64,000 nt of DNA from Amphiscolops sp. MND2022 (taxonomy: Eukaryota), in the NCBI GenBank assembly GCA_964187785.1, contig OZ076412.1, positions 37,014,001 through 37,078,000 of the forward strand, read 5' to 3'. The notes below the pieces were generated by a model. It saw only the letters and a list, made by a program, of their open reading frames with translations, had not been told where the DNA came from and did no database searches. A program made the position numbers and the translations under genes. Position 1 is the first letter of the stretch, and each line of letters begins with the position of its first letter. Shown here piece after piece: positions 19,380 through 56,070 of this stretch.

Positions 19380-19979
19380 ATGAATCATCCCATTTCAAAT
19401 AACCAAGCAGACGAAGACGTTTTTATTCTTGAACGAGATCAACAGCCAACACCGACTGAACAAAGGCCCAGTACTCCACCGCCTAATTATCGTTTCATCA
19501 ACCCAACGCAGCCTGCTATTGTTTATGAAATAGTCAAGACGGAAGACATACACGTAGTCCTTGTTCACGAACAACCAATTGCGAACGCAATTAACGTTGA
19601 AAATGAACAAGGAGTAATACGAAGGTTCACCACAGATAATCCGGTTATCCCAGATGACGAATTCATGAGCCCCATCAGACGATTCAATCAAGAGGACCAA
19701 AATAGCCCTGATTATTTTGTCGACAGCCCTATGAGCTCAATAAGCGAGACCGACAGCAGCTCAGAAGGCTACTGGTCAGGCAGCAGTTGGGAAAGCAGCT
19801 CTTCATGGCGATCATACGATTCAATGAGAGATGACCTCACCACTTTGTTTGATACACCGATACGATCCATTTCCCAATTTCTCCTTCCTGAGGGAACTGG
19901 GCAACGAAGCCGAGGACTGTCACAGCCCCACTTGAGCTGTGAGTATTGCAGCAGAATCAACCCAGTCTTCGAAGAATAA
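19380..19979 (+). CDS. ORF3, 199-aa sense ORF of unknown function crossing the PPT into the 3' LTR
   Basis: ATG-initiated open frame, acidic/Ser-rich, ends HLSCEYCSRINPVFEE; a relic with a similar CxxC..INP end crosses the LTR start of the older element at 27501. Confidence 0.55.
   Translation: MNHPISNNQADEDVFILERDQQPTPTEQRPSTPPPNYRFINPTQPAIVYEIVKTEDIHVVLVHEQPIANAINVENEQGVIRRFTTDNPVIPDDEFMSPIRRFNQEDQNSPDYFVDSPMSSISETDSSSEGYWSGSSWESSSSWRSYDSMRDDLTTLFDTPIRSISQFLLPEGTGQRSRGLSQPHLSCEYCSRINPVFEE
19890..19917 (+). promoter_or_regulatory. Putative polypurine tract (imperfect)
   Basis: GAGGGAACTGGGCAACGAAGCCGAGGAC, 21 of 28 purines, immediately before the TG of the 3' LTR. Confidence 0.45.
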
Positions 19980-22122
19980 ATTAGGAAATGGAAAAGGAGA
20001 AATGAAAACAGAAAACCAGAAAACAATCAGTTCAATCCATACAACCTGAAATAATGGCGCTAAATAATATAATAATTAGAAGAAATTTTATATTAATATT
20101 TATGTAGTTATATATACTTACATACAGTGTACTAACCGGTATAAAGCTACTTGTGCAGTTAATAGTATTAATACGGTGCTATATAATTAATAGTAATACA
20201 ATCACACCGCTCAGTAAGCGGCCTGAATGAATAATGGCGGAACTGCGGCCTGGCAGCCGGCCTGAGATATGCGCAGTGAAGCGGTGGCCTGGCGAGTGGC
20301 CTGAGAATGAAAGTGCTACGAATCAATCTCTAACACTAATTATGCTATTTTGTGAATACATGTAAACCTGTTGATGCGTTAAACGAGTATTAGAACAACG
20401 TTATACATGTAATTGTCCATATAAACAAGTATTGGAGCTAACTTTGAAATACCGATATACTGCGGCCCAGGACATGGCCTGAAATGTAAATCTATAAAAT
20501 CCATTGTAGAAATGGAAATTGTTAATGTTAATAGTGATCGTTTCTGCTCCTAATGAGCCTACCAATCAATGCCTGCAATCTCAAAAGATGCCTGAAGATA
20601 AAAATGAAGTATGATGCTATTTTTACAGATAAACCATGTTCAAGTGCTAAATGAAGTAGACCGCGGCCTGAGACACGGCCTGAAATCTATTCTGACCAAA
20701 TCCATCCTGGAATTGGAAATATCGATCCCCCTAACCATTTCTCCGCTCTCGCGAGGGAGCAGTGACGTAACACATACAACAGTAAGCGATATTGATTGAT
20801 TGCATGCAATGTATGATGATTTTAACCATGTAAATGCACTATTTAATTTGAGAACGCCAAGCTGCGGCCCAGACCTTGGCCTGGGATTAAATGTTCGATT
20901 TAATTTGTTTAATCTCCATAAATGATTTGTGTTGCCTTGTTTAGAGTTAATTTCCACTCAACTAGATTGGGAAGAGACTCGAACCGTATTTTCGAGTTGA
21001 TTCTAATCACTGAATTGTTTGTTGTTGATATAATTAATCATTATTTTTCGGGAAATGATTTTATTTTGCCTCAATCGTTCCAGACCTCAGCCTGGGACCG
21101 AGCTTTCCCATTTATACTCGAATTTGTGATTTTAAAGCTCTCATGAGTGAACTTTATGAGCTAATTTGTATTTCTTATTAAATAATCATCTCGCCGTGCA
21201 ATATTTGAACCAAATTAATTCGGGAAATTCTCATTTTCCCAATTTCCAATTTGTTGCTTTGTTCGATCATTTCGCTCTTTGGGCGTGCGCAGTGACTAAT
21301 TTTTTTTCACACTTTGTTCAGTTTCGGCGTCTTGAAAAGGCGGGAGTTGGAGGTGAAGGGAAGCGGAGTCGCAACTCAGACAGGAAGTGGACGCGTGCTC
21401 TCCTCGGAAAGCATGAACAAACTGAGAGTCTGAGTCGACAAAGCGGAACTGAACTTCCTGTTTCTCCGCCTTGGAGGGACGCCGGGCTGAATGAAGTGTG
21501 AAGGTGGTGCGGATTTTTCCCCGCTTCACGTGGGTGAAAAGTATATATACTTTGGAAAATTGAATAATTTCAGTGAATAATAGTCTTGATAATTTCAACA
21601 AGTTGATAATTTGACAATTTCGTTAGAATCTTGAAATTCAATAATCGCTCGTTGTAAAACAACTTTGCTTTTCACTTTGAAAATACAATTGAAGATTAAA
21701 AAACCTCAATCTTTTCCCTCATCTTCTCGTTGGATAATCTCGAGCTTATAAATCTTAAACCTGGAAAATGCCTGAAAGATCCTCTAAAAGAAAGGCCAGG
21801 AGAGATTCAGTGACTAGTTCACTAGGCGAGCCAGAAGCAACCAGTTTAAGAACTGAAAACGTTCCCAGTATTTCCGACCGAGACTTCTCTGAGCTATCTG
21901 AGAAAATTGAAAAGTCAGTGACCAGAAGGATAAAAGATGCTGAAGTTGGACAGAGGGAGATTTTGAAGATGATCGAGAATTTATCCTCAAAAATAGATTC
22001 ACTGTCCGGTCAACCGCCCAATTGTGAAAACCTCGCCTTAGATCCCGACGAGATCGAAAATCAAGCCTCAACATCAAGGCCATCCATACTGAACGAGTTG
22101 CACCCATCACAGGGTCAACACA
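19918..22122 (+). repeat. 3' LTR (2205 bp)
   Basis: Direct repeat of 5789-7995, followed by the TTATA target duplication. Confidence 0.97.
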
Positions 22123-34140: not shown

Positions 34141-34336
34141 GCGGTGTTGGGCCTTCTGGTCAAGGTATTCTGAGAAACTTTTAGGATTTTCGATTCTACG
34201 ATCTTTAACAGTAGAAACCCCCGTGTAACCTTTAATCATTTTTTTCTAAATTTTAGAGAATAATGATATTGTTTTAAGACGTGCATGAAATTATTTTTCA
34301 AATTCGTCCATTAAAGTTGATGAGTTTTGTTTCCAG

Positions 34337-34572
34337 GTGCTAACGGGGATTACGATGATACTCATAGTGTTGTCAATCATTGGGTTTTGCTTGGAGACTC
34401 ATCCTTTGCGATACTGGTCGTTTGATTTTACATTAGAAAAGCTATTCAATTCTGCCGCCACTTCACAAATTTCCCAAAACGATCAAACCTCACAGTTTCC
34501 TTCACAAGCGACGTTTCGAGCAGAAAACAAAACTTCTGCCGGCGATGTGACCGAATCTTTGTTTGATACAGG
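34337..34572 (+). CDS. KCNC: Kv3/Shaw potassium channel exon: S1 and S1-S2 linker (donor position uncertain)
   Basis: TTCCAG acceptor, then VLTGITMILIVLSIIGFCLETHP (S1 with the conserved FCLETHP); phase-2 GT at 34573 (alternative phase-2 GT near 34407). Confidence 0.8.
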
Positions 34573-35489
34573 GTTGGGAATCTCGGGAAGTTTTACTCTA
34601 GTTGAAAAAAAAACGTCCCAAAACAAATAATTTACTATTTCATTTGAAATTATCCCAAAAAGTCCATTTCAGAAGTTGTTGGGCACAGAACTTGGGGTTC
34701 AGAATTAAAATGGCCAGAGAAATAGCCTTATGTGAATTCACATCAAAAATCGTTCTTATACCTATCTATACCAGAAGAAATGATATTTAGCGGGAAGTGT
34801 TCATTGATCATAAAACGTTCGCTTTTGCTGCAAACAGATCTCGTGCTCAAGTCCATATTCAGTCCCTTTATCTCGCGAAAAATGCGAAAAAGAGCACCGT
34901 CTGACAATCGAGATGTTTCAAATGTTTTCAAACAAGAACTGTTTTGTCTTGTTAGTAAACCAACTAATGGAATGGATTACTAACTGGACAACTAAGTGGA
35001 TGGATGTAGAATAACTGGATGTAGAATAGATGACGATGCTGGGTCACCAAAAACTAACTGGATGTAGAATAGATCACGAACTTTCAGTGAAGTATCTTTC
35101 TTTGACGATATTAGCTGTCGCTTGACCTTACTGATGGGAATTCCGAAAAAAATATCACGATACTACAGCACTGCTTATACTATTCCATCATGTGAGAAAA
35201 GGAATTATCCTAGAAAGGAACTTGCACTAGCAGCGCAGTGGCACCGCGTGTTATTATTCGAGATTGTAAGATGCGTGTAAGACTATGAACAGGAAAGAAT
35301 AGCTTCTCGTCCTCAACTCCAGTATATACTGGTATATAATATTAGATATTCGGCTGTATTTGTTGCCGTTGGCTAACGTTCAAAACTCTGGGCTATTTAT
35401 TCCGTGAAAACTTTCAGAGAATTTTGCCATGAAGTTCTAGAATTACATAAAAAGTGTTGGCAACTGAGAAAGTCAAGGTCCCAACTCTG
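34569..35489. mobile_element. Possible hAT-type MITE occupying almost the whole Kv3 intron
   Basis: CAGGGTTGGGA / TCCCAACTCTG inverted ends (10/11); no clean TSD. Confidence 0.4.
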
Positions 35490-35506
35490 TTTTTTTAATA
35501 ACTAAG

Positions 35507-35855
35507 TTTCTCCGGCGTGGTTTCTACTTCGACCACTTCTACTTCCCATTCCACAAACGATCATCAATCTAAGCTCAGGATGACAGCCCTGTTGAATGTC
35601 AACGACCAAATTTGCTCCGTTTGGTTCACGATTGAGTTCCTTGTGAGAATATCATTTTGCCCCAATAAAAAACTGTTTTTAAAAACATGGATCAATATTG
35701 TTGATTTATTAGCAGTTATTCCATTTTACTGCCAAACTGTTTTCTACTTACTTACAATCGACCACTCAGAAACGTTTCTACGCTTCATTGAGATCACCAA
35801 AATCCTACGAATAGTCAGGGTTTTCAAGCTGGTCCGGCATTTCATTGGACTGAAG
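35507..35855 (+). CDS. KCNC: Kv3/Shaw exon: S2, S3, S4
   Basis: Phase-2 TAAG acceptor after a poly-T tract; ICSVWFTIEFLVRISFCPNK, NIVDLLAVIPFY, KILRIVRVFKLVRHFIGLK; ends at AAG|GC donor. Confidence 0.9.
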
Positions 35856-35856
35856 G

Positions 35857-36171
35857 CAGGGTTTTCTAAAACTCGTTTTAATGGTCAAAATTCATTCGGA
35901 TATACATCTTTGGAGTAATGAGAGTCAACATTTAACTGCTGTCATAATGACAACGTCTTCGTTTTGTCGAATAGATTTTGTTCTTTCTAAAAAGAAAACG
36001 TTTGAAATCGAAAACTCGTGAACCTAAACAAACCTAAGGACCTAGCAATTAGACATAATATTTTATTTTCGTTCAGACCTATTTTTTTTCTTGAAAAAAA
36101 CTGACCACAACAACCATTTAGTTAGTGATGGAAATCGCGGCTGCAATGAAAGGAAATAATAGGAAATCCTG
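35857..36171. mobile_element. 315-bp hAT-type MITE forming the GC-AG intron 35856-36178
   Basis: TIRs CAGGGTTTTCTA / TAGGAAATCCTG (10/12); 8-bp flanks ACTGAAGG / CCTGAAGG (7/8). Confidence 0.65.
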
Positions 36172-36178
36172 CCTGAAG

Positions 36179-36380
36179 GTGCTTGTACACACACTGAGAG
36201 CGAGTGCGAAAGAACTGCTGCTGTTGATAGTCTTCCTGGTGATGGGGGTGATAGTGTTCTCTAGCCTCATGTACTATGCAGAGGGCTTCGGTCACGTGAC
36301 CAGTGCAGTCAACTTCAACAATGAGTTCGACACCATCCCAGCCGGATTCTGGTGGGCTCTTGTTACCATGACTACTATAG
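36179..36380 (+). CDS. KCNC: Kv3/Shaw exon: S4-S5 linker, S5, pore helix
   Basis: [35 protein letters not shown]...[16 protein letters not shown]; canonical G|GTCAGT donor. Confidence 0.95.
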
Positions 36381-36612
36381 GTCAGTTTTCCGCTTTCTGT
36401 GCTGTTTTCATGGATAATTAAAGCAAACTGTTTGTTATAGGTATATATGAACAAACTCAGTTCTGAACGATCATTTTATTTGATGGCTGATATAGTTAAC
36501 TACAGATAAATTGTGCCACGCATGCATGTTTTATTGGAAAAACTGAAACCGGAAGAAATCGAATGTGAAAGACTCCGTTTATGCCAAAGTGCTACAGTAT
36601 CATGAAATGATA

Positions 36613-38742
36613 CACTATGGTACCAAAAAGCTAAGTACAGCTGAATTTTTTGAATTTTTTTCAAGTCAAAAAAAATGAAAACATTTGTGAACAATTTCAA
36701 TCAGTTACCGGAAGTTGTGCTTCGAAAATGGTTAAACCGCTTGATTCATTTTTGGTTTGCAAAATTGTTACTCTTCGCGAGATTGGGTTATCTTACAATC
36801 AAATCAAAGAGAAATTGGGTTTGAAGTCACGATCAACAGCACAGTCAGCTTACAAGCGCTTTTTGAAAACCAGTTCTTATTCTCCAAAAAAACCACCAGG
36901 AAGACCGGAAAAACTTAGCAAAAAAGACAAAAGATTAATTATAAGAAGCGTCAAAAACGATCCCAAAACTACATTACAAAGAATCAGGGTAAAGTATAAT
37001 TCTTTTGCAACCTCAAAAAGTGTCTCAAGATCTACAATTCGGCGAGTTCTGAAGAAGTATGGGCTAGTTTCTAGAGTGGCGGCTAAAAAATTTCAGCTCA
37101 ATAAAAAACAACGAACAACGAGGAAAAAATGGTGCTTGCGAATGTCCAAGAAGCCGCTCGGTTTTTTGTCCAGCCTTGCACTCACTGAAAAAAGTACATA
37201 GTAAAAAATTTTCAATTTTGGGAAGGAAAATCATACACAGAGTCATACACAGAGTCCGCAAATAGACGAAAATTTTCAGCAAAAAAATCGGAAATTTTCG
37301 AAAAAAATCTCAGTTTCGGAATTTTCCTAATTTTTTTATCGCAACACCAAACGGCCCCTCCTACAAACTTTTCGGCACTGTGAGACAATTTTTTCTCAAC
37401 ACCAAAGGGTCTCCCTTCGAAATTTTTCGGCACTGTGAGACAAAAAAATCAAAAATTTAGAAAAAAAATCGAAATTTTCGAAAAAAATCTTCGAAATTTT
37501 CCCAATTTTTTTCACAACATTTCACAATAAGAATGCATTCTTTTATTTTTGAAACCTTCCAATTACGGCCTTGAACTGAAACAAAATCCATGCATGAATT
37601 TTGGAATTTTTTTCAAAATTTCGATTTTTCGAATATTTCATTTTTTTTTGTTTCACAGGGCCGAAAAAAATTCACAGGGTGACCCTTTTCTTCTGTTTGC
37701 GAAATCGTCTAAAAACACGGGACAGCCCTGGGGTGGAACCCACAATCTTTGGTGTCAAAAGTGAGAATTCAACCGGCTGCGCCAAATCTACTTGAATTCG
37801 AACAGTTAAAAGCGGCGACTAAAAAAAATAAATGTCATTGTAATAGTCGGGCACTTTTTGATATAAGCGCCGACTAAGAACCGTAAACAATCGGGGAACA
37901 GCGTAAGTCGGTGACCTGCTTAAGCCTCAAATTTATCGACAAAGTGTTTCAACTTTTTCTGACTTTTTCTTTTGTTTTTTATTATCGCAGATTTTTGTAG
38001 TACTCTACTTTTGCTATTCTTTTTCTCATGAAGTTTTACATAATAATCTTGGCTGGATGGAAAAGGATTCTGGGAAAATGTGGTTTTCACTGATGAAACT
38101 CGTGTGCGTCTGAACAGTGACGGTATTGTAAGAGTTTTCCGAGAAAAAGGATCGCGTTTCCACTCAAAAAATATTCAAGGGCAGAACACTGATAAACGCT
38201 CGCTTATGTTCTGGGGAGCTATTCGATCGGATGGCAGGAAGATGCTAATTAGATGCCCGGCAACACTCAATAGCAGCGGCTATGTCGAAATTCTTGAAAA
38301 GTATGACAGAAATTTGCACCTACCGGACATTGTTTTCCAGCACGATAATGCCCCAATTCACAGAAGCAGAGAGGTTTCCAACTATCTAAGTGAAAAGAAG
38401 TGGGATGTGCTCGAATGGCCTCCGTATAGTCCTGATTTGAACCCCATGGAAAATATTTGGGCTATACTGAAGAAATCCCTGCAAGGACAAACTCTAACGT
38501 GGGAAAATTTGGAAGAAACAGTGATTGATATTTGGAACAATATCAGTCCCGAAATTATCCGAAATATGTACGCATCTTATGAGAGTCGCCTCGTAAAAAC
38601 TATAAAAAACGATGGAAATATGATTGGTTATTAGTGTGTTTGTCTCCTAATTTGATTATATTTTTTTTCTGTTTAAATTTCAAATTTTCCTCTCAGTTTT
38701 TAAAAATTCAACAGGTGTACGTAGCTTTCTGGTACCATAGTG
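36613..38742 (+). mobile_element. Tc1-family DNA transposon (DD34E); transposase split by a 905-bp insert
   Basis: TA on both flanks; 31-bp TIRs CACTATGGTACCA... (28/31); N-terminal HTH part 36728-37160; catalytic part 38066-38634 with FTDE, QHDNAPIH, SPDLNPMENIW (34 residues between D and E). Confidence 0.92.
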
Positions 38743-39429
38743 TATTTACTCTCACGCATGATAACGCATGAAACATCAAGCGGAGGAATTTTCTTTAAAA
38801 TGAAATAGTGTATACTTTCAGTTAAATCATACTTCATTGCTTTGTGTAAATTTGGATCATCAAGGTTCAGTTTGGGTCCATCGAAACAGTACAGTCCCGG
38901 GTTTCCCAACCAGGTTGATCATACTCTGATCATATATGGTATCATGCAAATCATACAATTTTTTTCTATGATCTTACAATGATCAATCTGGAATCATAAA
39001 TGATTCAGAGTAAGGTCAACCTGGAACCATAAACTTCTATGGTCCAGTCTGAAGTCATAAATGGCCCAGATTAGGATCAAACTGCAATCATATTTTTTTC
39101 CAAATGCGGTTTGATGTGACATGCACTTTGAACAAAAATTTTCAAGTATTGAGATTCGCCAGCTTTATAGGCCGAGCCACATTCGACTTTTTGAATCTGC
39201 GAACGATACCTTGCAGGTCAGAACTCAGTTAAACTCTTAGCGGAGCTGAAAACAAACTATATTCACTAACTGGACCATAACAGTTGGTTTATGATTCCGA
39301 CTGACCATACTCGCACCATATATAGTTCGGTCTATGGTGAGCCGGCAATGTTCAACGAAATCATGTTGATCATAATGTGGGCCTTATATGGAAACAGGTT
39401 AATTTTCCATTCTAACATGGCTAGTTGAC

Positions 39430-40370
39430 GACGGTTAGTAAGGCACCCATCCGAACTGATGCATTCGTATGGGTGCCAAGCGCATCACATGAATCTGTTT
39501 GCTAAAGATTTTAGTACTAAACTCATGAACCCTATTGACCGAATTCTCAATGTTATAAAACACTTGCGATTACATCATACACAAAGTGCACTTCTCCGCC
39601 AAAACAACATACCACGTCCTCCTCTACCAACTGAGACTCGTTGGAACTCAGTGTCTGACACGTTACAGTTTTTTGTCGAACAGTGGCTGATTTGGGCGGT
39701 CGTTGTCAATGCAATAATGAGGCCTAGTGATCCGATATATCCCACTATGGAGGATATTCAATTGAAACTCACTGCTGCTGACTTATTGGAAACATCCAAG
39801 CCTCCTGCAAAGCCCTAGATGAAGTGCAGAGCGATTTATGTTTCATTGGAGAGTGTTATCAGAGATGTTACAATCTGAGAAATAAAACACCAGGGCAGTT
39901 TGCTGAAATCACTTGTCAGAGATATGAAAAAGCTGTTCAGGAAAACCCTGTTATCTTTGTCGCAAATCTTCTTGATCATCGTTTTACTGGCAACAATCTT
40001 GATACAGATGATGTGTCAAATGCTCTCAATTACATCAAAAATGTCCATGAGAAAATAGTTCCAGAAGTTATGAAGTTCGTGTCGAAGACCCATCCTTACA
40101 CCTTACTTCGAGGGGACTTTCTAAGATGATCATCCTGTGTCGTGGTGGAAATCTGGAGTCAAAATGGGTTTCGATCAAAATCTTGCAAAAGATGCAATTT
40201 CGTTGGTGTCCGCCGCTTCCTCTTCAAGAGGCTTGGAACGCTGTTTCTCTACGCTGGGAACCTTTTACGGAAAGCTGCGAACATCGATGGGCATTGAGAA
40301 GGCCGGAATTTATGTACCGCCAAATAAACAAGAAGTGATGGAATTGCTTCGTGAAATGATTTGATTTTGA
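39430..40370 (+). pseudogene. hAT transposase C-terminal relic
   Basis: CQAHHMNL (CxxH), PTETRWNS and AASSSRGLERCFSTLG..KLRTSMGIEKAG motifs across three broken ORFs. Confidence 0.8.
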
Positions 40371-41249
40371 TGTTATTTTTTTAACACTTTAAACTAATTT
40401 ACATGTTTTTTATTCTAACTGTTTTAAACTGTTAAAAGTTTTTTCAACTAACAACTTAACAGCGACGAGTTTCAGTTGCAATTAGAGTTATAAAATGTTG
40501 CAATTTGATTGGTTGTTAGTATTAATTCGATGATAATTTCACTTGAACTCATAACTGGGGAGATTAAATTGGTGGGGGGGTATATCTAGTTTCTTCAAAT
40601 CTCTGTTCTCTATAGAGAATTCCATCTTGTTGAAAAGCATCAAATCGATGTTCAGTTTTGATAAAAGTTTTGATTCATGTTAGCCCAGTAAACATAAGGA
40701 AACACATGAATTATAAACACGCTAAGTACCTAACTTTGTTGCTCAACTATGTGGCTACCAGTACCTAACCTTCCAAATTTTTATGTTTTTAGTCGGTTTT
40801 ATATAATAAAAGAGCCCGACTATTACAGTCACTCGTTTTTAATCGGCGCTTTTCTTGAAAAGAGCCGACTATAGTCATTGCTTTTCATCAGTGTCTTTTA
40901 AAAAAATTTCAATACATCTGAAGTGACCAAAATAGTTCTACCAAAAGTTCTACAAAAATTTAAATATCACCTGTTGGCAAAGGGAACTGGACCAAAAAGG
41001 TTCTTACTTTTACCGTGTAACATACATTACTGGGCGAGACTAAACGGTCTCTCTTCCAGTTTCTTTTTCGGCATGGTGCGACTTTTCTTCGAAATTTTTT
41101 TCCATCAAAGGGTCTCCCTTCAATTTGTTTTGGCGTTTTGCGACAGAATGGATGTTGTGAACGGATGCTGCGAATGGATGTCGTGTCAATTGTGAGACGT
41201 TTTTCAAATGCATTTTTTCAATAGAAAGTTCCCCAATTTACCAATACTT

Positions 41250-42300
41250 TGACATTTTGAAGTCCTTTTGCTAATTTTGAGCCTTAGATATTGCGCTGAC
41301 TTGGGCCGGCCTCGGCTTGTTTCTTTAGGACAGAATTGAGACGAAATTTTTCAGTTTGCTCCACTTAAAGTATGACTGGAAATGCATCTAAAGTATTGCA
41401 AAGGGACCCCTTTTCATTTTTACTTTTTGAACGTAATATACAATACCGGACGAGACCGAAGGGTCCCCCTGTAATTTTTTTCGACCATATGAGACTTTTG
41501 AAAGTTTTGAAAAGTCTCTAAAGGGCCGGCCCCTTCAGATTTTTGATATTTTGAAACCAATTGGATGTTCAATAACCCAGAGGGTCCACCTTTTTGCATT
41601 TTTGGCACTATGAGACCGTTTCAAAATTCTGATTTTTTTGTGAAATTAGGTTTTCAGTCGACGCTTTTCGTAGAAAACGCAGACAATAGTAGTGACTTTT
41701 CTTTTTTTCGAAGACCAGCGAAGTGACAGATTTCATAAGTTTTATAAGTTGACTTGAACTAACACTAAATGCCACACTACTTCTACTGGCACTTGAGATA
41801 GAGGTTAATTTGGCTTTTTCGAGGTCCCCTTTTACATTTTTTGGCACTATGCGACTTCCCGGGACCAAAAAATTAAAAAAAATTAGACAATTTTTTCTTC
41901 AATTTTTTCCTCATGCGGTACTGTAGAAGAGAATACTTGACACTTTGAAGTCCTTTTGCTATTTTTGAGCCTTAGATATGGCGCCGACTTGGGCCGTTCC
42001 CGGCTTGTTTTTTTAAGACCAACGAAGTGACAGATTTTATAAGCTTTATAAGCTGACTCGAACTAACACTAAAGGCCACACTACTTCTACTGGCAATTGA
42101 GTTAGAGGTTAATTACGCTTTAATGATGTCCCCCTTTACATTTTTTGTCACTACGCGACTTCTCGAGGACCAAAAAAATTTGAAAAATTCCGTAATTTAC
42201 AATTTTTTCTACATGCGGGTACTGTAGAAGAGAATACTTGACACTTTGAAGTCCTTTTGCTATTTTTGAGCCTTAGATATGGCGCCGACTTGTTTCGATA
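41250..42300. repeat. Non-coding repeat with two ~300-bp tandem units (41710-42009, 42015-42295) plus a partial copy
   Basis: TTTTGAGCCTTAGATATGGCGCCGACTT block occurs three times; units end in a GCCG-TTCC-CGGC hairpin plus TTGTT, loosely Helitron/HINE-like. Confidence 0.6.
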
Positions 42301-43149
42301 TATATTCACTTTTAACACATTTGTTCGAACTTTTGCGTTTCATACGAACTTTACTGCGTTTTCCCAAAGCATTTACAAATGAGGCCGAAGTTCGAAAACC
42401 AGCAATTTCATTCGTCCCAGCATGAAACCTTTAGGTGTTTCCACACTTTTATGTAAATTTGTCATTAAAAGACGTCCTGAGCATGCTTTAAAAACTTGTG
42501 GCACCAGTCGTGTTGAGCTAACGTCACCAAAAACGTCCAGAATAGGAAAATTTCAGCCATTTTCTCCAATAAGAAACAGCAGTTGTCTCTTCTAAAAAGC
42601 CTACTGGATACCGAGTTCAGTCGTTTTTGAATGTTCACACCATTCAAACCCACCAAACAGCTCGAAAGTTTTTAAAAAATTGCATAAAAAGTCAAAAACT
42701 TTTTCATTTATGGGTCTAATTGGGGTTGTCGATCTAGCTCGGGAACTGCAAAAATCTGCATTGCTTTTGATTTTGCTGGAACTCACTGAACATTAAAAAT
42801 TTGACAATTAAGGTCGGAACGAAAATTCCGTTTTCGAGTAAAGTTTTTTTGAAAAAATTGCGAACAAATTCGTCCGATATCTTTTTGAACCACAAACAGT
42901 TACAGTTTCTGATCTTTTCGATGTTTTTTTGACTAATCTCAATGATAGGTCCCTAAAAAGGTCAAATTTGGCAAAACGTTTGACGTTTTGGACTTTTCGC
43001 GGTCAATTTAGAAGCATTTTCAACAAGTACTGCAAAGATGTATTCGAAAAGCCTACTGAAAGACGAATATGATCTTTAGCGAACATTTCCAACATTCTGA
43101 CACCTAATTATTTCGGAACAGTTTACAAAAGTCTACGGTCAGCCATTTG

Positions 43150-46100
43150 TTGAATCTATCTATGGAGGAAAAAGTGATGTTCAAGGTTTAACTTTCAATT
43201 GTTTAGTGCGCCGGAGAATTCGATTTGGATTTCTTGTCCCGGTTCCGTTTTTGTTTTCAATTTTCCGCTTTCATGTTTCGGTAATTGAGTGTTTGAAGTT
43301 CTTACCCGATGCCATGAAGGCCACGCAGTTTTTTGTTTTCTTTGTCTTTTGAGATGTTCTGCCATCAAAACATTTTGGCTTCGTTGTTCCGACATGACCG
43401 CGGAGCAGCGTTTCTAATAAATGTTTTCTCGATTCTGTGGGTACGACGATTCTATCGTCGTTGAATGTGAGGTTGCATTATTCTCCATTTTTTTGAAAGC
43501 CATTCGGTATAATTCTGGTGCCGTGTTTTTTTGACTCGTCTCATGGCGTCTCCAACAAGGTTGAGCTCGGCGTCTGTGGTGGACTTTGCTATCAGAGTCC
43601 TAAATCAAGCATGAAGTTGAACTCGGCCTTTTTGATTGTTTCTTTCGTGGCCTTCTTGTCTGAATAAAATGGGCTTGCTTCGCTTCTGTTTTGGAACTTT
43701 TCCGGCCTACAATGGGAACGTTGTCACCTCGGATTATTGGGTTTTCACCTTTGCGTTCGTTTTCTTCGATGGTCTTCTGTTGTTGTTCGTCATCTTCCTC
43801 TATCCTTTCTTCCAGTGGCTGGAATCCTCCGCCGAACGTGTTCGCTCGTTTTAACAGTCCACCGTCAACCTCTGTAGTCTCCTCTTGGCTTCTTTTCTTC
43901 TTTTATTTGGTCCCAAAGTGACCCAGGTTCACCTTTGGACGATGAGGTCGAACCTTCCGGTCGGGAAAACTTTTTTGATTCCATCAGTGTCAATTTTCTG
44001 GGCGTTTTGCCTTTTCGTCTCAATATCTCTTCAATCTCAGCTGTTGCTCCCAGTGGAAGTAATCGTTATCCATTTCTTTTCCTAAATAAAAGGTAAATTT
44101 GTGCTGTAAATTGACTTTTGTTTCGGATTCTGGTTTGGAATTTCCGTTTTAAACTTTTCTCAGCGTTCAATCGATGTGGTTTCAACTTGTTTGCAACGTT
44201 TGTTCACGTCTAGATTTTTCTCGAATGTTCTTTTCCGATTTGATTGGTTATGTTTTGTTTCGGTCGTTTCATTTCCAACACGTTATTTGATTTGTGCACG
44301 AATAGTAGTACATATTTAATGTTTTTTTTTCGGCTGGTTCTGAAAGGATGTTAATTACTTATTGTTCGTTGTATACATTTTCGACCACCGCTTTCTCTAC
44401 AAGTTTTTTACTCCGTTTCAAACTTTTCGCGGCGTTTAATCGATGTGGTTTCAACTTCTTTGCAATTTTTGTTCACCTCTAGGTTACTTTCAACTGTTTT
44501 ACTCCGATTTGATTGGTCAAATTTTGTCTTGGTCGTTTCATTTTTTCCGACGCGTTATCTAACTGGTCAACGAATAGTGGTCCGTATTTGATATTTACTT
44601 CAGCTTCTTCTGAACAGATGTTGAATACTTATTGTTCGTTGTATACATTTTCGACCGCAGCTTTTTCTACAAGTTTTCTACTCAGTAAGTCGGTGAACTT
44701 TTATTACTTCCTGCGATGTGTTGGATGGCCTTGTGAAAGTATTCAAGCCGATCTAGCCATCTAGTTAACCTTGCGCTACATTGTCTGTTGCATCGGTTCC
44801 TTTTAACATTGATTGAAGTGCCTGGTGGTCTTTGAAAAGAAAGACTTTTTGTCCGTATAAGAAAAACCGGAACTTTCCTAAGCCCCATTTAACTGCCAAT
44901 AAATCCAATTTTCCGATTCAGTAGTCTTCCGCTTTCATTCAGATATCTGCTACCGAATGCTATCGGTTCTATTTCTCCGCCAGATTGTTTTTGGCCTTAT
45001 GTTTTTCTGAGTCGGGTTGCCTGCGTCGGGTGTTATATTGTTTTCTCTGTCATTAGCATAGTGAGTTAGGCATGGTTCTCCAGTCAACTGTTTTCAATGT
45101 TCCAAATTTCTTCTCGTTCACCCCGTCCCCATTCCACTTCGAGTTATCTTTAGATTTTGTCGTAGTCCTTCAGTTCTTTCCGATAAACTCGGTATTTTTT
45201 TCCGAGGACTTGTATTCTACCCAGAAATGATGTTCAATTCATTTTGGTTCTCTGAGTGTTGCTAATCTAGGATGACTTTTACTTTTTCGGTTTAATTCCT
45301 TGTTCATCAATGTCGTGTCCCAGCTATTTTGTTTTAATCAGAAAATCATCGGATATTGTTCCGCTTGCTCGGAATTCGGCGTCCGCAACACTTTTCAGTA
45401 CGTCGAAAAATTGCTTCTCATCTTCTGCTCGGTCTTCTTTGGTTACGACTACTGTAAAATCCAACCAAGCTGGTGTAGAGTATTCCATTGTCCAACTAAC
45501 CGGGTTTCCTTAGTTCATCTCTTTTTCTACTGACTGCTCCTTGGAGGTGTAGTGGAGTTGGTCTTGATTTTGTTTATCACTTATTGTAGTATTGTTCTTG
45601 ATAAATCCGGAAACTTCTCAATCAATCGTCTCTTTCCTGATTGGTTGTTCTCGTGCAATTGGATGTTTCTGATTGTTAAGTTTCGTTTCGTCAGCCAGTT
45701 TATTACGAGTAACGGCGTTATGTAATTTCTTCCGGTGATTAGTACCCGCAACTTTTGTTTGTTGTTTTCGTAGTGGATGTCTGCTGTTATCGTTCCTCGG
45801 AATTACACTTCATTTCAAATTTTACGTTGATTTTGAAGTTTCCTTTTCTGTATCTTGGTTTTTTAGCGTACTTTTGACCCCGGCATCAAAGCTCCCGGTA
45901 TAGAACTTTTTTTTCGTATTTATTTTGTTGAATCATTTCGATTGTTTTCCTTAGTTCGAATTTCTTTTCTTTCATCAGTTTGTCTCGGAGTTTCGTATCC
46001 GTAATTGCAGGCATGAAACTCGAGATGAGTAGTTTTCGGCTGACACTCCTTCCAATGAGCATTCTTTATCAATTTCCAATATTCTACATTAGAAGTCTTC

Positions 46101-46330
46101 TGGTGATTCGGTTTCTCTCTGAGGAGTCCAAAAAGTCTCCTTGGTTGTGGTTTGCGGTCCTTTACTGGTACGAAGTATTCGTCGATCAATCGGATGTAAT
46201 CCTTTACTGCTAATTTAAACGGGCTCTGTTTTATCACCGTGCGTCTCATCTGGTATAATGATTTTGGGCCGCTACCCCATATGAAATCTTTTCGCTTTCT
46301 TTGTTGGTCCAACCGTTTTGTGTAATTTCA
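43150..46330 (-). pseudogene. Degraded Ty3/Gypsy gag-pol of a different family
   Basis: Gag relic DFIWGSGPKSLYQM; RNase H-end relic RLTRWLDRL..QHIAG; integrase relic EIQIEFSG; ~270-bp internal tandem (44157-44690). Confidence 0.65.
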
Positions 46331-49300
46331 ACCACTGTATCAATTCTATGTTTTCTTGTAATTTCTTTCTCGAAAAATTTTGAGCCATTGTTTTGGTGTC
46401 AAAATTTTTCCTCGTCCGATGTGGACTTCAAAATCAGTACTTTAATTTGTTTCGCTTCTGGTCTCATCTTTTTTGTTCTGACAAAAACTGTATCAATATG
46501 TATTAAGGATTGCTGAGTGCGCAATTTTCGATAGGTTGCTTTCAGAAAAAGAAAAAAATACTTTGTTAAGAATTTCTCTTCAGTATTTTGCCGACCAAAG
46601 TATATAGTACCAAAATTCAGTATCAAATGAATTAGCAGCCCACTGAGATTATAAATACTATGTTTACCAACATAAAATAGGTCACAAAACATAATTGTCA
46701 TTTGATAATAAAGTGGTGTTGGCTGACAAATTTTTCGAATGAATCGGTTCCGTATGTCAAAAAAGATTTGATGGTTGCTATTTTCCGCCCACATATAATG
46801 GAGGAGGAAAATCATAATCTGTGTTGCGTTTTGTTCCACAAAATCCGCCAAACTTCCACTTACTCAATTCACTAAAGTCTAGTCACCATGGCGCATTTGG
46901 TAGTGCGTCTTCCTGGCAAACAAGAGGTCGTGGGTTGGAACACGTGGTGATGCGTTTATTTTTAGCGAATAGATCTCGGTGCTTAGCTAGCGTGTTGTTT
47001 TTTTGTACTGTGACTTTTTTGGAAGTATTAATAACGGGCTTTTTGATACCTTTGAATGAGGGAAGTCGTATTCAAGTCTTCAGATCTTTTTGGCAATGTG
47101 CGACGTTTGTCTCGAAAATTTTCTTTTTTCCAAAAAAGTCCCCCGTGGTTCGTGCTACATGTACATTATAGAGCCTTTTCAAAACCAAGGTTTCAAACCA
47201 AACATTTCGATTGTCGGATATTTCCCGTGGGAATAAAAAATTCTTTGAAGCAAAATTTGTTTTGCTCCTGATTTGAAGCACTTTTTGAATAAGATTCGTT
47301 TAACAAAAACTCGAATATTTTATCAAATACATATAATACAATGCTAAAGTTTTAGTAGGCGAACACTGTGGAAGCCCAGCTGAGATTGCTGAAACTTTTT
47401 ACTTGATGCAGGCCTGCATGCAGTGTAATTTCTAATAAAAACAGAAAATTCAGTAAAGTTCTTGTAGTGAATCTTGTAGAATTAGACTGCATTTTCCACA
47501 ATTAAAATCAAATTTGAAAATGTTTGCCCTTTATTCACGGACACAATAACATTGTGTTTAAAAATTGATTTCTCATCTACTCATCTGATTTAATAACGTC
47601 TTCTCAAATTGGACGCTGAAGTTGGCGCCAGTTTGATGTTTACTTTGTGAGTAAGTTGATTTGCAAAATTGGCGGCAAAATAGTTGACGTCTCAGCGGCA
47701 TTTGAAATTAGGACCAATTCATAATGAAATTTGCAGAACTTCATGGCTTGAAATCGCCGCCAAATCTTTGATGTTTCTTTCCAGCAGCTTGATAAAAGCT
47801 TGATTGCAACAGATTTTACCGCAGGTAAAGTAACCCTAAGACTTTTAAAAAATCTTTATAAAACTTGCTGGAAACTCTGAAAAGCATGTAAAAAGTTCAA
47901 GCATGTTCAGCAAGGTAGATAATCTGTGCCTTTTTGCGGCGTTTAATCGATGCGGTTTCAACTTCTTTGCAATTTTTGTTCACCTCCTGGTTACTTTCGA
48001 CTGTTTTACTCCAATTTGATTGGTCAAATTTTGTCTTGGTCGCTTCATTTTTTCCGACGCGTTATCTAATTGGTCAACGAATAGTGGTCCGTATCTGATA
48101 TTTACTTCAGCTTCTTCTGAACAGATGTTAAATACTTATTGTTCGTTGTATACATTTTCGACCGCAGCTTTTTCTACAAGTTTTCTACTCAGTAAGTCGG
48201 TGAATTTTTATTACTTCCTGCGATGTGTTGGATGGCCTTGTGAAAGTATTCAAGCCAATCTAGCCATCTAGTTAACCTTGCGCTACATTGTCTGTTGCAT
48301 GGGTTCCTTTTAACATTGATTGAAGTGCCTGGTGGTCTTTGAAAAGAAAGACTTTTTGTCCGTATAAGAAAAACCGGATCTTTCCTAAGCCCCATTTAAC
48401 TGCCAATATATCCAATTTTCCGATTCAGTAGTCTTCCGCTTTCATTCAGATATCTGCCACCGAATGCTATCGGTTCTATTTCTCCGCCAGATTGTTTTTG
48501 TCATTATAATTTTCTGAGTCGGGTTGCTTGCGTCGGGTGTTATAATGTTTCTCTGTCATTAGCATAGTGAGTTAAGCATGGTTCTCCAGTCAACTGTTTT
48601 CAATGTTCCAAATTTCTTCTCGTTCACCCCGTCCACATTCCACTTCGAGTTATCTTTAGATTTTGTCGTAGTCCTTCAGTTCTTTTCGATAAACTCGGTA
48701 TTTATTATCCGAGGATTTGTATTCTACCCAGCAATGATGTTCAATTCATTTTGGTTCTCTGAGTGTTGCTAATCCAGGATGGCTTTTACTTTTTCGGTTT
48801 AATTCCTTGTTCATCAATGTCGTGTCCCAGCTATTTTGTTTTAATCAGAAAATCATCGGATATTGTTCCGCTTGCTCGGAATTCGGCGTCCGCAACATTT
48901 TCCAGTACGTCGAAAAATTGCTGCTCATGTTCTGCTCGGTCTTCTTTGGTTACGACTACTGTAACATCCAACCAAGCTGGTGTAGAGTATTCCATTGTTC
49001 AACTTACCGGTTTTCCTTAGTTCATCTCTTTTTCTACTGACTGCTCCTTGGAGGTGTAGTGGAGTTGGTCTTGATTTTGTTTATCACTTATTGTAGTATT
49101 GTTCTTGATAAATCCGGAAACTTCTCAATCAATCGTCTCTTTCCTGATTGGTTGTTCTCGTGCAATTGGATGTTTCTGATTGTTAAGTTTCGTTTCGTCA
49201 GCCAGTTTATTACGAGTAACGGCGTTATGTAATTTCTTCCGGTGATTAGTACCCGCAACGTTTGTTTGTTGTTTTCGTTGTGGATGTCTGCTGTTATCGT

Positions 49301-51441
49301 TCCTCGGAATTACACTTCATTTCAAATTTTACCTTGATTTTGAAAATTCCTTTTCTGTATCTTGGTTTTTAGCGTACTTTTGACCCCGGCATCAAAGCTC
49401 CCGGTATAGAACTTTTTTTCGTATTTATTTTGTTGAATCATTTCGAATGTTTTCCTTAGTTCGAATATCTTTTCTTTCATCAGTTTGTCTCGGAGTTTCG
49501 TATCCGTAATTGCAGGCATGAAACTCGAGATGAGTAGTTTTCGGCTGACACTCCTTCCAATGAGCATTCTTTATCAATTTCCAATATTCTACATTAGAAG
49601 TCTTCTGGTGATTCGGTTTCTCTCTGAGGAGTCCAAAAAGTCTCCTTGGTTGTGGTTTGCGGTCCTTTACTGGTACGAAGTATTCGTCGATCAATCGGAT
49701 GTAATCCTTTACTGCTAATTTAAACGGGCTCTGTTTTATCACCGTGCGTCTCATCTGGTATAATGATTTTGGGCCGCTACCCCATATGAAATCTTTTCGC
49801 TTTCTTTGTTGGTCCAACCGTTTTGTGTAATTTCAACCACTGTATCAATTCTATGTTTTCTTGTAATTTCTTTCTCGAAAAATTTTGAGCCATTGTTTTG
49901 GTGTCAAAATTTTTCCTCGTCCGATGTGGACTTCAAAATCAGTACTTTAATTTGTTTCGCTTCTGGTCTCATCTTTTTTGTTCTGACAAAAACTGTATCA
50001 ATATGTATTAAGGATTGCTGAGTGCGCAATTTTCGATAGGTTGCTTTCAGAAAAAGAAAAAAATACTTTGTTAAGAATTTCTCTTCAGTATTTTGCCGAC
50101 CAAAGTATATAGTACCAAAATTCAGTATCAAATGAATTAGCAGCCCACTGAGATTATAAATACTATGTTTACCAACATAAAATAGGTCACAAAACATAAT
50201 TGTCATTTGATAATAAAGTGGTGTTGGCTGACAAATTTTTCGAATGAATCGGTTCCGTATGTCAAAAAAGATTTGATGGTTGCTATTTTCCGCCCACATA
50301 TAATGGAGGAGGAAAATCATAATCTGTGTTGCGTTTTGTTCCACAAAATCTGCCAAACTTCCACTTACTCAATTCACTAAATTCTAGTCACCATGGCGCA
50401 TTTGGTAGTGCGTCTGCCTGGCAGACAAGAGGTCGTGGGTTGGAACACGTGGTTATGCGTTTATTTTTAGCGAATAGATCTCGGTGCTTAGCGTGCGTGT
50501 TGTTTTTTTTGTACTGTGACTTTTTTTCGGAAGTATTAATAACGGGCTTTTTGATACCTTTGAATGAGGGAATTCGTTTTCAAGTCTTCAGATCTTTTTG
50601 GCAATGTGCGGCGCTTGTCTCGAAAATTTTCTTTTTTCCAAAAAAGTCCCCCGTGGTTCGTGCTACATGTACTTTTTAGAGCCTTTTCAATACCAAGGTT
50701 TCAAACCAAACATTTCGATTGTCGGATATTTCCCGTGAGAATAAAAAATTCGTTGAAGCAAAATTTGTTTTGCTTCTGATTTGAAGCACTTTTTGAATAA
50801 GATTCGTTTAACAAAAACTCGAATATTTTATCGAATACATATAATACAATGCTAAGGTTTTAGTAGGCGAACACTGCGGAAGCCCAGCTGAGATTGCTGA
50901 AACTTTTTACTTGCTGCAGGCCTGCATGCAGTGTAATTTCTTATAAAACCAGAAAATTCAGTAAAGTTCTTGTAGTGAATCTTGTAGAATTAGACTGCAT
51001 TTTCCACAATTAAAATCAAATTTGAAAATGTTTGCCCTTTATTCACGGACACAGTAACATTGTATTTGAAAAATGATTTCTCATCTTCTCATCTGATTTA
51101 ATAACGTCTTCTCAAATTGGACGCTGAAGATGGCGCCAGTTTGATGTTTACTTTGTGAATAAGTTGATTTGCAAAATTGGCGGCAAAATAGTTGACGTCT
51201 CAGCGGCATTTGAAATTATGACCAATGCATAATGACATTTGCAGAACTTCATGGCTTGAAATCGCCGCCAAATCTTTGATGTTTCTTTCCAGCAGCTTGA
51301 TAAAAGTTGATGGCAACAGATTTTACCGCAGTAAAGTAACCCTAAGACTCTTAAAAAATCTTTATAAAACTTGCTGGAAACTCTGAAAAGCATGTAAAAA
51401 GTTCAAGCATGTTCAGCAAGGCAGATAATCTGTGCCTTTTG
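44429..51441. repeat. Tandem duplication of a ~3.5-kb unit (44429-47935, 47936-51441)
   Basis: ORF-track pairs recur at an offset of 3505-3507 (44513/48020, 45920/49425, 46399/49904); only a few percent divergence by eye. Confidence 0.95.
46882..46951 (+). repeat. tRNA-derived SINE head or tRNA pseudogene (second copy 50387-50456)
   Basis: GTCACCA/TGGTGAT acceptor-like stem, GCGC-ATTTGGTA-GTGC D-arm with A-box, degenerate B-box GGTTGGAAC, loop CTGGCAA; anticodon and T stems broken. Confidence 0.5.
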
Positions 51442-51899
51442 AGTATAAAAACTGAAGTTCAAAAAGTTTGGAAACAAACGCGGCTGAGAAATTAATTCTT
51501 TAAAATGTCCCATGTGGTATATGAGCGGATCCTGTGATGTGATGTGAGTTGATCATCCTACATGGAGATATTCCGGTTTGATTTTTCCACTCATTCGATA
51601 TCAGGTTCAGAGACTATTGCATATTTGAAAGGCCCATGGAGTCTGTTAGCGCAATGTACACGATTATTTGCAAAATACTACATCTATACCATATTTAATT
51701 ATTACTATTATTGTTTTTTTTCATTCTATTTTACTCCACTTCTATTTTACTTGGGACTATTCGCAGTTTTGTTATATCAATGTTCTGTTTATCAACGAGA
51801 AAATGGATTGGCCGAGACGGAGTTGACGCATTATCAAGCGTAAACCCTTAACTATATCTACTTGAAATGGAGTTATTTGACCATAACAATTTGTGAACA

Positions 51900-54400
51900 T
51901 CTTCACGCCTACCCTTGAGGTGGATAACTATGATTTGTAAACAATCGTGCATGACGGTGTAGCGGCAAGCCGAAAAGTTCCATTCATGAAACTTTTGGAC
52001 GTATCGGGGCAAATCACTGGAGAATCTGCCGCTGAAACTGACTTGCCGGGAAATCGCTCTATCCGATCATTTCGCGAAACTACTAAAGAGATCCATTCTA
52101 ACTTCATTTCCTATGGAGAAAATTTGCCCCAAATTCATGATTGCAAAAAAAATAATACTAGATAAATTCAACAAAGAAAAACTGTTGTTTGAAACAGAAG
52201 ACTCCGATGTACACTCATCTACTGACTCAGTTATCTACGAATTCATCGACGAGGACACACTCTCCGGTGACAGGCAATCTGATTAGATTACTGATACGGA
52301 AGAACCGGTGAGAAGAGTGGAGACGCAATTTGTGTCGAGCTAACTGTTGATCCGAGGCAGAGTAATTACACTAGCCAACGACGTGGACGCGTCATCCATG
52401 CCCGGCCCCAGTTTTAGTAGATTAATCGGAACGTGACCCTATAACTCAGCTGGGAGTGCTTCGACAAAACGTGTGCTATGCGCTGTCTGAGTGGGGTCCA
52501 AAACCCAACAATGGGCAGAGAGTAGAGCTGTGCAGAACCATGATTCCAGTACCAGACACTCCCATGTTGCCCACTCCTCACGAGAGAGGCCCAGTATTGG
52601 AAACGCCGGTCACTCAGACTGTATAACGAACATGGAATCGCGTTCCTGATTCAAGGCTCGAAACCGTACGACGACGTGAGCGCTGGGAGGTACACTGGGT
52701 GCCTAGTATTCGGTAAATCGATTGAAATAACTAAATCAGAATATGTAGGAGAAATCATTAGACAATCTATACCGAGCGGAGCGGAGCGGCCCACGCGAAG
52801 ATGTCTTGAACCTTAGAAGGGAGGCGTACTTAGCAGGACTAAACACGGGTTCATTCTTGTTCATACCACCCGCAGTGTCTCAGGCTGCCGCCGGTGATGG
52901 CATAAAATACCCAACCTGTACTGGAAAACGAGGAGTTATCCCAGGAGCGCTGCAATCGAACAAGAGCGAGCTGTAAAGTTATACGCAAACAAATTCAAAG
53001 GCGCGAAAGCGCTTTTACGGCGATCATTTTATATGCTACTCTTGTGCTGTACTATACTTTTCAAGTTAAGGCTAGTTGACCAAATGTCGCTTGTGCTTAT
53101 TTGAAAGCTAGGCAAATGAGCGGTTCCCGCGGAATAGGCATTGTTAGTTGGTTGTTGTTAGCAGGTTAAATATGTTGTATTTGTAAGTAATATGTAGTCA
53201 GATGTTGGGCTATTACTCTGAAGTTGCTAAATACCTTACTTTTTGCTAGAGTAGCTTAGGTTGTCATGTTTACATGCATTACCCGGACTAGGTTAAAATA
53301 CAGGGTTGAAAAGGTGCTATAGATTATCACCTGTTAGAACGCCTAGGAAGGTTTTCTCACACCTTTTTACAAATACCTGATACTTAGTGACATTCCTTTG
53401 CAAGGTACGTGTGTACCACGTGCCTAAGCATGTTGTTTGCATCTTTAAGATGACCAATAATCTTCGGCGCTTTGATTTTTGCTAAAGTATGAATGATGAT
53501 TGTAGTCAGGTGCTGTTTTTAGCTCTCATATCCACTTGATCAGCTGTTTTTAATATCTTCGAACTGTAAATTATGAATGTCATTCTGATGGAAGTATACA
53601 TACCTTAACTGCTTCTCGAAGCAAACAAGATAAGTAACTTCAAGAAGGTATACTCGCTTATGAAACTGAACTTTTCTGATTCAATTAAAGTGTTTCCAAT
53701 TGGGCTTTTTATGCCTGTGACTAGGAAGCAAAAGAGTAAAGCAATGCGGTCCAGAGGAGCGGACATTGTCTGACTTGGAAAAAATTACTTTGATAGTCGG
53801 TAGTTTGCCCTTTGAAAGAGAGGAAAGTGATTGTAATGATCTAACTCGTAGACCTGATAGCCAAAGTTGTGAAAATTCAGCTGAACGCAATTCCTATAGC
53901 AACTCAAACTCTAGAGAAAATGAGATTAAGGGACTTGCTGGAAATGGACACTCAACTAGCGAAATTGGTTCAAATAACAGTTTCAATCGCCTAACTGGGG
54001 AAATCTATCAGAGATTAACACAGGAAATGAACGGATTGATGGATAGCTTTAACTTAGAGATCCAAAGGGCAATGAATGTGGCCATCAACGAGTAAGTTTT
54101 TTCTTCAATACAAGCTTCCTTCAGGGCTTTGAATGAACAAACAACTGAACGTGAGGGAAACGCCCGGCGTGAGAGATCGGAACGAATATCCAAAAATGCC
54201 TTCAGGCACAACATCAGGTTTAGCAATAGAGATGAGCGCCTCTTTGATCCAAATTTTAGTGAAGATCATGAGGATTCACATTACTGAGGACACACATGAG
54301 GACACTTTTCAGTTGAAAAACTCTTTTCGATAAGTAAAGGTTATGTCGGAAGGTATTACAACTGTCCCAAATTGGAGACGACACGAAATTTTTCTGAAAA
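51900..54400 (+). mobile_element. 3' part/LTR relic of another Gypsy family
   Basis: Decayed coding-like sequence followed by a Gag-leader-type frame (MPVTRKQKSKAMRS..SDLEKITLIVGS..RLTQEMNGLMDS) comparable to the LTR-encoded leaders at about 950 and 28560. Confidence 0.4.
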
Positions 54401-55749: not shown

Positions 55750-56070
55750 GTTACGGCGACAGTGTGCCTAAGACTTGGAGTGGAAGAATCATTGGGGCAC
55801 TGTGTGCTATCAGTGGTGTGCTTACCATCTCACTCCCAGTTCCGGTGATCGTGAACAACTTCACCCTGTACTACAACCACGCCCAGGCGCGACTCAAGCT
55901 GCCAAAGAAGAAGAGGGCAGCCAAACTGGCAGCTGCAGCCCCCGCCTTCAAAAGTCTCCAGCAGCTGACTATGGTACCCCTCTTTCTGGACGGAGGGGTG
56001 GCACAGTTCAACAGGACTGACGCTTGCGGCGATACAGGCAACCAACAGAATGACGATGCTCATAGCAATT
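55750..56070 (+). CDS. KCNC: Kv3/Shaw exon: selectivity filter YGD, S6 and proximal C-terminus
   Basis: TTTAG acceptor in phase 1 completes TMTTIG-YGD; [50 protein letters not shown] is typical of Shaw/Kv3; T|GTAAGT donor. Confidence 0.95.

Follow-up and report, generated by a model that had tools for sequence, protein, structure and literature searches.

A Shaw/Kv3-type voltage-gated K+ channel gene in the window (the whole 64-kb stretch of DNA analysed here) is interrupted in its S4-S5 linker by a 323-nt segment that is bounded by a direct repeat and by an inverted repeat abutting it, that is absent from orthologs and paralogs, and whose removal in silico as a GC-AG intron restores the conserved protein. 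The whole chain of events, in which a transposon would have given rise to this intron and the intron would be spliced from the mRNA, is the reading that we modestly favour. The insert is probably a further case of the transposon-derived intron gain that is already known from other organisms, with its closest animal parallels in Fritillaria and Daphnia.

The channel gene and its surroundings

Part of the channel gene was recognised on the + strand of the window, in the form of four exons:

34337..34600, + strand: exon for S1 and the S1-S2 loop, 3' end approximate, located by tblastn with P0007, P0187 and P0257; acceptor AG at 34335-34336
35507..35855, + strand: exon for S2 to S4, with the last residues ...RHFIGLK, start approximate; candidate acceptor AG at 35505-35506
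36179..36380, + strand: exon running from VLVHTLRAS to TMTTIG, which encodes the S4-S5 linker, S5 and the pore helix; donor G|GTCAGT at 36381
55750..55904, + strand: exon for the selectivity filter (YGD) and S6, the coding sequence running on past 55904

Throughout, W denotes the window gene, L001, L003 and L004 are its orthologs from other ENA samples, and L005 is a paralog from the window's genome. DNA homology to L001 extends to about position 34580 in the S1 exon and begins by 35536 in the S2-S4 exon. Both central exons match the Pfam domain Ion_trans, the upstream exon up to profile position 116 and the downstream exon from position 118, and on the Kv3.1 structure 7phh the upstream exon is aligned up to residue 332, with the second residue of the downstream exon aligned to residue 334. 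The best PDB matches of both exons are to Kv3.1 (KCNC1; E=6.6e-22 and 2.2e-17), structures of Kv1 and Kv2 matching at 1e-14 or weaker and Kv4 also falling well behind. The gene tree places W within the Shaw family, and the named homologs of the paralog are KCNC/Shaw proteins (50% for Symsagittifera; 44-57% for vertebrate, cnidarian and echinoderm Shaw, by cluster names). For a spectrin-repeat ORF of the window's genome, named relatives did not exceed 24% identity. When the N-terminal parts of five Shaw proteins were used as tblastn queries, no credible exon for the T1 domain (BTB_2) came up in the part of the window that precedes the recognised exons (34 kb), and the T1 domain may lie further upstream. 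The protein collection searched contained no annotated or transcript-derived full-length protein of the window gene.

The exons of W contain neither stops nor frameshifts and have at most two lineage-specific amino-acid changes in 159 codons. Compared with L001, 15.5% of the coding bases differ, and 60 of the 74 nucleotide differences fall at third codon positions, almost all of the differences being synonymous. With three replacements in 159 codons, dN is 0.011 and dS 0.8-1.5, which gives a dN/dS of about 0.01. Because dN is low and most differences from L001 lie at third positions, the window gene is seen to be under strong purifying selection.

Most introns of the gene are ordinary GT-AG introns with long bodies filled with transposable elements (TE), and the one that separates the pore exon from the S6 exon (36381-55749) is a TE-filled intron of 19.4 kb. 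A 2.14-kb Tc1/mariner element with HTH_Tnp_Tc3_2 and DDE_3 ORFs lies 230 nt downstream of the S5-pore exon (window 36610-38746). Its 157-aa ORF is found in identical form on 71 contigs of the same assembly, and the copies sampled are 99.2-99.9% identical, some of them being internally deleted; judged by these copies, the family is very young and probably active, and transposons in general are plainly active in the window's genome. Further into the same large intron, a string of + strand ORFs (window 39291-40364), the last part of which (40137-40364) matches Dimer_Tnp_hAT (PF05699) at a sub-threshold E=0.14, is probably a decayed remnant of a hAT transposase, and a search for its ends found none. 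The intron also holds a pair of repeats of about 3 kb (window 44423-47400 and 47930-50908) that are 97.6% identical, each copy with a 150-aa ORF on the minus strand, in a region of strong AT skew. On the other side of the recognised exons, an LTR retrotransposon occupies approximately 6000-22000 of the window, its pol ORF being 2028 aa long (8892-14978) and a further ORF, in antisense, 835 aa (15317-17824).

Ends and splice register of the insert

The upstream exon ends with ...CAT TTC ATT GGA CTG AAG at 35855 and the downstream exon starts with GTG CTT GTA CAC at 36179, and reading on from 35856 into the insert leads to a stop after 20 codons. The insert consists of the following parts:

35856..36178, + strand: putative GC-AG phase-0 intron of 323 nt, the removable segment, which parts the K codon from the V codon in the S4-S5 linker
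35857..36171, + strand: element body, 315 bp, from CAGGGTTTTCTA to TAGGAAATCCTG
35849..35856, + strand: left copy of the direct repeat, ACTGAAGG, with a final G that opens the GC donor
36172..36179, + strand: right copy of the direct repeat, CCTGAAGG, the source of both the AG of the acceptor (36177-36178) and the opening base of the exon
35854..35868, + strand: left arm of the terminal inverted repeat (TIR), 13/15, from a repeat search; 12-nt version at 35857-35868
36160..36174, + strand: right arm of the TIR, from the repeat search; 12-nt version at 36160-36171

The first-pass annotation had claimed that the protein junction HFIGLK|VLVHTLRAS is restored only by removing 35856-36178, and both the reading frame and the colinearity of the exons with Ion_trans and Kv3.1 agree with this. 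The ends that it had described were reproduced. The 315-bp element has imperfect TIRs, CAGGGTTTTCTA matching the reverse complement of TAGGAAATCCTG at 10/12 positions, and these can be extended to 13/15 (15 nt at 87%). The flanking 8-bp duplication matches at 7/8 positions and is exact over 7 bp only, namely the 7-mer CTGAAGG at 35850-35856 and 36173-36179. A direct repeat of this kind permits eight splice registers, and plausible ends are found only in the register that runs from GC (35856-57) to AG (36177-78). In this register, as had been claimed, the donor GC is composed of the G of the duplication and the C of the element, the right copy provides the AG of the acceptor, and one copy of the duplication together with the element makes up the removable segment.

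The splice sites themselves are weak. The acceptor lacks the polypyrimidine tract of the gene's other introns, as already noticed in the earlier annotation: pyrimidines make up 36% of the 25 nt that precede it, compared with 52-72% at the gene's other acceptors. The U1 likeness of the donor AAG|GCAGGG is only moderate. In the predicted RNA fold, the TIR arms pair into a 15-bp terminal stem, which closes the intron and would bring both splice sites together; the stability of the whole intron is unexceptional (z = -1.4), and the terminal stem alone stands out. Tandem repeats were not found in the region. Inside the element there is also a weak canonical pair, AGG|GTTTTC (GT at 35861) and AATAG|G (AG at 36161-36162), the use of which would leave 21 in-frame nt encoding AGKSCLK.

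The frequency with which such ends arise by chance was estimated from a design in which the reverse complement of the left TIR, with at most 2 mismatches, is followed by the target-site duplication (TSD), with at most 1 mismatch. Among 578,776 20-mers from both strands of about 290 kb of the window's genome, the design was matched only by the real right end, and the TIR test alone was passed by one of the 5,592 AGG-ending sites in these 290 kb, which is the real site. When the 64-kb window was scanned for TSD/TIR pairs with the same loose thresholds, at all positions and for lengths of 100-1000, nine matches were obtained, and the count of the TIR pattern in the window was not above that in shuffled sequences. 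Since the design match is unique and the free scan of the window gave nine matches, the chance per fixed intron is about 1e-5 or less, a figure that is strong for a single intron; many thousands of introns were surveyed, and hence it is not overwhelming alone.

The insertion site and other introns in related genes

A phmmer search with the S2-S4 exon returned two near-identical ORFs. The first, P0001, is the window's own exon entering the insert, and its contig in ERZ25074608 and the window share 100% identity along 6.4 kb. The second, P0002 (97% amino-acid identity), reads through the junction unbroken and then enters the next intron; it lies on L001, a 51-kb contig of assembly ERZ26859043 that carries the closest ortholog. 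Where the window has CTGAAGG, the element and again CTGAAGG, the target occurs once in L001 (...GGATTGAAGGTACTT...), with no insert, the empty site there reading TTGAAGG. The paralog L005 of the window's genome (P0151, 57% at the amino-acid level) is uninterrupted at the insertion site, as are its ortholog L018 (P0007) and the ortholog L004 (ERZ25878734), and many Shaw ORFs from large genomic contigs likewise have the junction unbroken. ERZ26859043 carries both L001 and L018, and the presence of both paralogs in one sample fixes the orthology of both pairs. The expectation that related genes would lack the insert was thus borne out in L001, L004, L005, L018 and many Shaw ORFs, and the segment is very likely a lineage-specific insertion or gain. 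L001 is deeply diverged from the window species, with a dS of about 0.8-1.5 in the channel gene and above 1.8 in the paralog, so that the comparison gives no evidence of recent gain.

At the identical boundary, AAG|GTG, L003 (ERZ25071359) has a canonical GT-AG intron of 665 nt (L003:9369-10033), in which neither similarity to the window insert nor end repeats were found. The first-pass annotation had named a shared intron position as an observation that would speak against its reading. Such a position does exist in L003, but the intron there is GT-AG and unrelated, and the phylogeny favours an independent gain. A maximum-likelihood tree built on the 159 codons that the genes share has the topology ((W,L001)94,(L003,L004)88), with the paralog clade as sister and with outgroups that are intron-less. 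On this tree, the same-site introns of W and L003 require two gains, as against one gain and two losses, which favours independent gains in W and L003 as the more parsimonious reading.

The cost of the other reading can be stated more fully. An old intron, present in the ancestor of W, L001, L003 and L004, would have been lost precisely in L001 and in L004, and the end repeats in W would be due to chance. Such a history would account for the position of the L003 intron exactly at AAG|GTG; animals commonly lose introns, and the species are deeply diverged (dS above 1). It is nevertheless improbable, for it takes three events on the tree instead of two, it joins the introns of W and L003, which are without similarity, and it would have a 7-nt repeat and a 13/15 TIR either persist or arise by chance at neutral sites, neither of which is expected. 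Extended to all six lineage-specific introns of these genes, it would require many more losses.

These introns, six in number with that of W, lie in the conserved core of the Shaw genes of four species, and three of them have non-GT donors (GC twice, both times in the window's genome, and GG once, in L004). Besides the intron at AAG|GTG, L003 has a further GT-AG intron at HFLK|RW (6564-9184). The L004 ortholog, which is otherwise intact, contains a 577-nt GG...AG segment (11860-12436) that must go between ASAK and ELLLL, 11 codons beyond the insertion site of the window; this segment contains a foldback repeat with another copy at L004:2973-3145, and no homology was found between it and the window insert. 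An additional GT-AG intron of L004 lies at FLR|FIE (10339-11753). The paralog L005 has three introns that are missing from its ortholog L018 (sample ERZ26859043), namely a 792-nt GC-AG intron within the S6 PVP motif (L005:10590-11381), inside which lie direct repeats about 100 bp long and a pair of CAGGGTT... motifs, and two further GT-AG introns (about 9340-9990 and 11489-13451). No convincing TE end signatures were found on the introns L003 A, L003 B, L004 A and L005 S6, and nested repeats alone were seen in L004 B and L005. Judged from these gene comparisons, an all-loss account of the lineage-specific introns would need far more events than gain. The L003 protein also carries an insertion of about 50 Ser/Thr/Gly-rich residues in the S5-pore loop.

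Probable source of the insert, its predicted splicing and parallels elsewhere

The origin that we propose begins after the split from the L001 species, when a short non-autonomous DNA transposon with terminal inverted repeats, and with an end sequence and a duplication length like those of hAT elements, would have landed in the coding exon of the S4-S5 linker and duplicated the target CTGAAGG. With AGG at the end of the duplicated target and C at the start of the element, the left junction would read AAG|GC and the right junction AAG|G. The spliceosome would then remove the element and one copy of the duplication as the 323-nt GC-AG intron, by which ...GLK|VLV... would be restored.

A transposon as the source of the insert is fairly likely from the structure of its ends, and the labels "MITE family" and "hAT" are tentative. 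BLASTN searches (word size 7) with the 315-bp element covered the window, ten random 20-kb loci with the abundant Tc1 ORF, the paralog locus and three loci from related species. The claim that the element is a MITE was not substantiated by them: no second copy was found in the window and 11 other loci, which amount to about 290 kb of the window's genome (about 225 kb of it outside the window) and to a tiny fraction of a genome with pieces above 40 Mb, from which a low-copy family would escape. In 54 kb from related species there was no match beyond chance.

The TIRs of hAT elements are short and begin with YARNG, and their usual target preference is nTnnnnAn. The termini of the window element (CAGGG on the left and, reverse-complemented, CAGGA on the right) fit the first of these patterns, and its duplication does not fit the second. 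The hAT-like elements in the window's genome have 8-bp duplications and CAG...CTG or TAG...CTA ends. One of them, a 355-bp hAT-like MITE at L012:13583-13937, has the 8-bp duplication GTCGATGG / GTTGATGG, and its TIRs are CAGGGTTTTGTC / CAGAGTTTTGAC; it also has subterminal TTAGCG repeats of the kind seen in genuine MITEs. It begins with the same 9 nt, CAGGGTTTT, as the window element, and no internal similarity was found between the two. The earlier assignment to hAT has in its favour the CAGGG terminus, the repeat of 7-8 bp and the presence of CAGGGTTTT in one MITE. The duplication is exact over 7 bp only, and a matching autonomous hAT was not found in the sequence sampled. Compared with hAT MITEs in general, the window element has the duplication of about 8 bp, the CAG termini and the small size (315 bp), and it differs in the shorter exact repeat and in that neither sibling copies nor an autonomous partner were found.

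A different source has been described in Daphnia, where introns are ascribed to staggered double-strand breaks that were repaired in an error-prone manner, filler DNA being captured. In that case the direct repeat would be the footprint of the break and the TIR a coincidence. A short direct repeat does flank the insert, a related copy is absent across the approximately 290 kb sampled, and the unrelated intron at the identical site in L003 follows a pattern reported for Daphnia (PMC4202315). From filler DNA, however, a 13/15 inverted repeat abutting the direct repeat would not be expected; the TIR test is passed by a single one of 5,592 AGG-ending sites, the real one, and the termini CAGGG/CAGGA resemble those of hAT-like elements of the window's genome. 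We consider break repair an unlikely source and infer transposition instead.

Removal of the 323-nt GC-AG segment from the mRNA is suggested by the restoration of the frame in silico, and the spliced junction is predicted to join ...GGACTGAAG directly to GTGCTTGTA.... The protein databases searched yielded no transcript-derived protein of the window species. In two other genes that are intact, the paralog L005 and the ortholog L004, a GC-AG and a GG-AG segment, respectively, need to be removed, which suggests that such junctions are used in the group.

If the transposon had inserted and were retained or imprecisely removed, the gene would be a pseudogene of recent date or an allele with impaired function or none. 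Several features would suit this: the donor and the acceptor are weak, read-through meets stops after 20 codons, the exons of the T1 domain were not found in the window, and the paralog could buffer the loss. An imprecise route is also at hand in the internal GT at 35861 and AG at 36161-36162, which would leave 21 nt and add AGKSCLK. Against it, all four of the exons seen are intact; the dN/dS is about 0.01, and lineage-specific replacements number two at most. In the assembly of the window sample, no P0002-like joined ORF was found that would represent an allele free of the intron. The intact paralog has a lineage-specific GC-AG intron of its own, and the intact gene of a related species needs the removal of a GG-AG segment. 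Homologs do not differ in the length of the S4-S5 linker, and a 7-residue insertion would thus hardly be tolerated. Retention or imprecise removal has, on this balance, a low probability, and precise splicing of a transposon-derived segment is the reading carried forward here.

Introners are non-autonomous DNA transposons that create introns, and they are described for Micromonas, Aureococcus, dinoflagellates and others (Gozashti et al., 2022, PMC9860276; review PMC11282704). According to the figures of the same sources, they bring or co-opt GC/GT donors and take the AG from the duplication, GC/GT donors being found in Micromonas IE1 (PMC11282704 Fig. 2; PMC9860276 Fig. 2). In animals, very few cases are reported, copepods being mentioned in PMC9860276. 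Like the window insert, introners combine a short TIR element with a duplication, have to be spliced out as the element plus one copy, derive their splice sites partly from the duplication or insertion site, and are absent from orthologs. Unlike it, they are defined by families of near-identical introns in many genes, whereas the window element is known from a single copy; the window insert is further set apart by its animal host and by its split donor, with the G from the duplication and the C from the element. Of the introner mechanism claimed for the insert, the TIR/TSD ends, the derivation of the candidate splice sites from the duplication and the element, and the empty orthologs were confirmed, and family copies were not found in the approximately 290 kb.

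Oikopleura has G*-AG introns. For another appendicularian, Fritillaria borealis, MITE-derived non-canonical introns are described in the summary of that work (Henriet et al., 2019, summarised in PMC11282704). Like the window lineage, Fritillaria and Oikopleura have TIR/TSD insertions at species-specific intron positions and tolerate non-GT donors; the window insert differs from the Fritillaria introns in being GC-AG instead of AG-AC or AG-AT, and the introns of its gene are mostly GT-AG. Among the new introns of Daphnia pulex, 48% are parallel gains at homologous positions and the repeats of staggered breaks are common, and these neointrons are ascribed to double-strand-break repair, not to transposons (PMC4202315). 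The Daphnia introns and the window insert have in common that they are lineage-specific in an animal and carry short terminal direct repeats, and the pair of W and L003 parallels the frequent gains of unrelated introns at one site. Terminal inverted repeats are not a feature of the Daphnia neointrons, whereas the window insert has a 13/15 TIR abutting its direct repeat.

To our knowledge, most animals seldom gain introns, and the traces of how a gain came about are as a rule lost over time. In this strongly constrained ion-channel gene the footprints of the event are still readable, in the duplication, the inverted ends and the empty site of the ortholog. The small Shaw family to which the gene belongs has six lineage-specific introns in four related species, among them a putative parallel gain at the same site and three non-GT donors. 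It is conceivable, though on present comparisons rather doubtful, that the lineage is going through a phase of active intron gain, with DNA transposons being converted into introns after insertion into coding exons; some of these introns would have non-GT donors (GC-AG, GG-AG) and some would arise repeatedly at one proto-splice site. If true, such a phase would be an animal counterpart of the algal and dinoflagellate introners, and the Kv3 intron would be one case among many. If splicing and sibling elements are confirmed, these genes would offer a tractable animal system for the conversion of transposons into introns and for the tolerance of the spliceosome towards weak or non-canonical sites.
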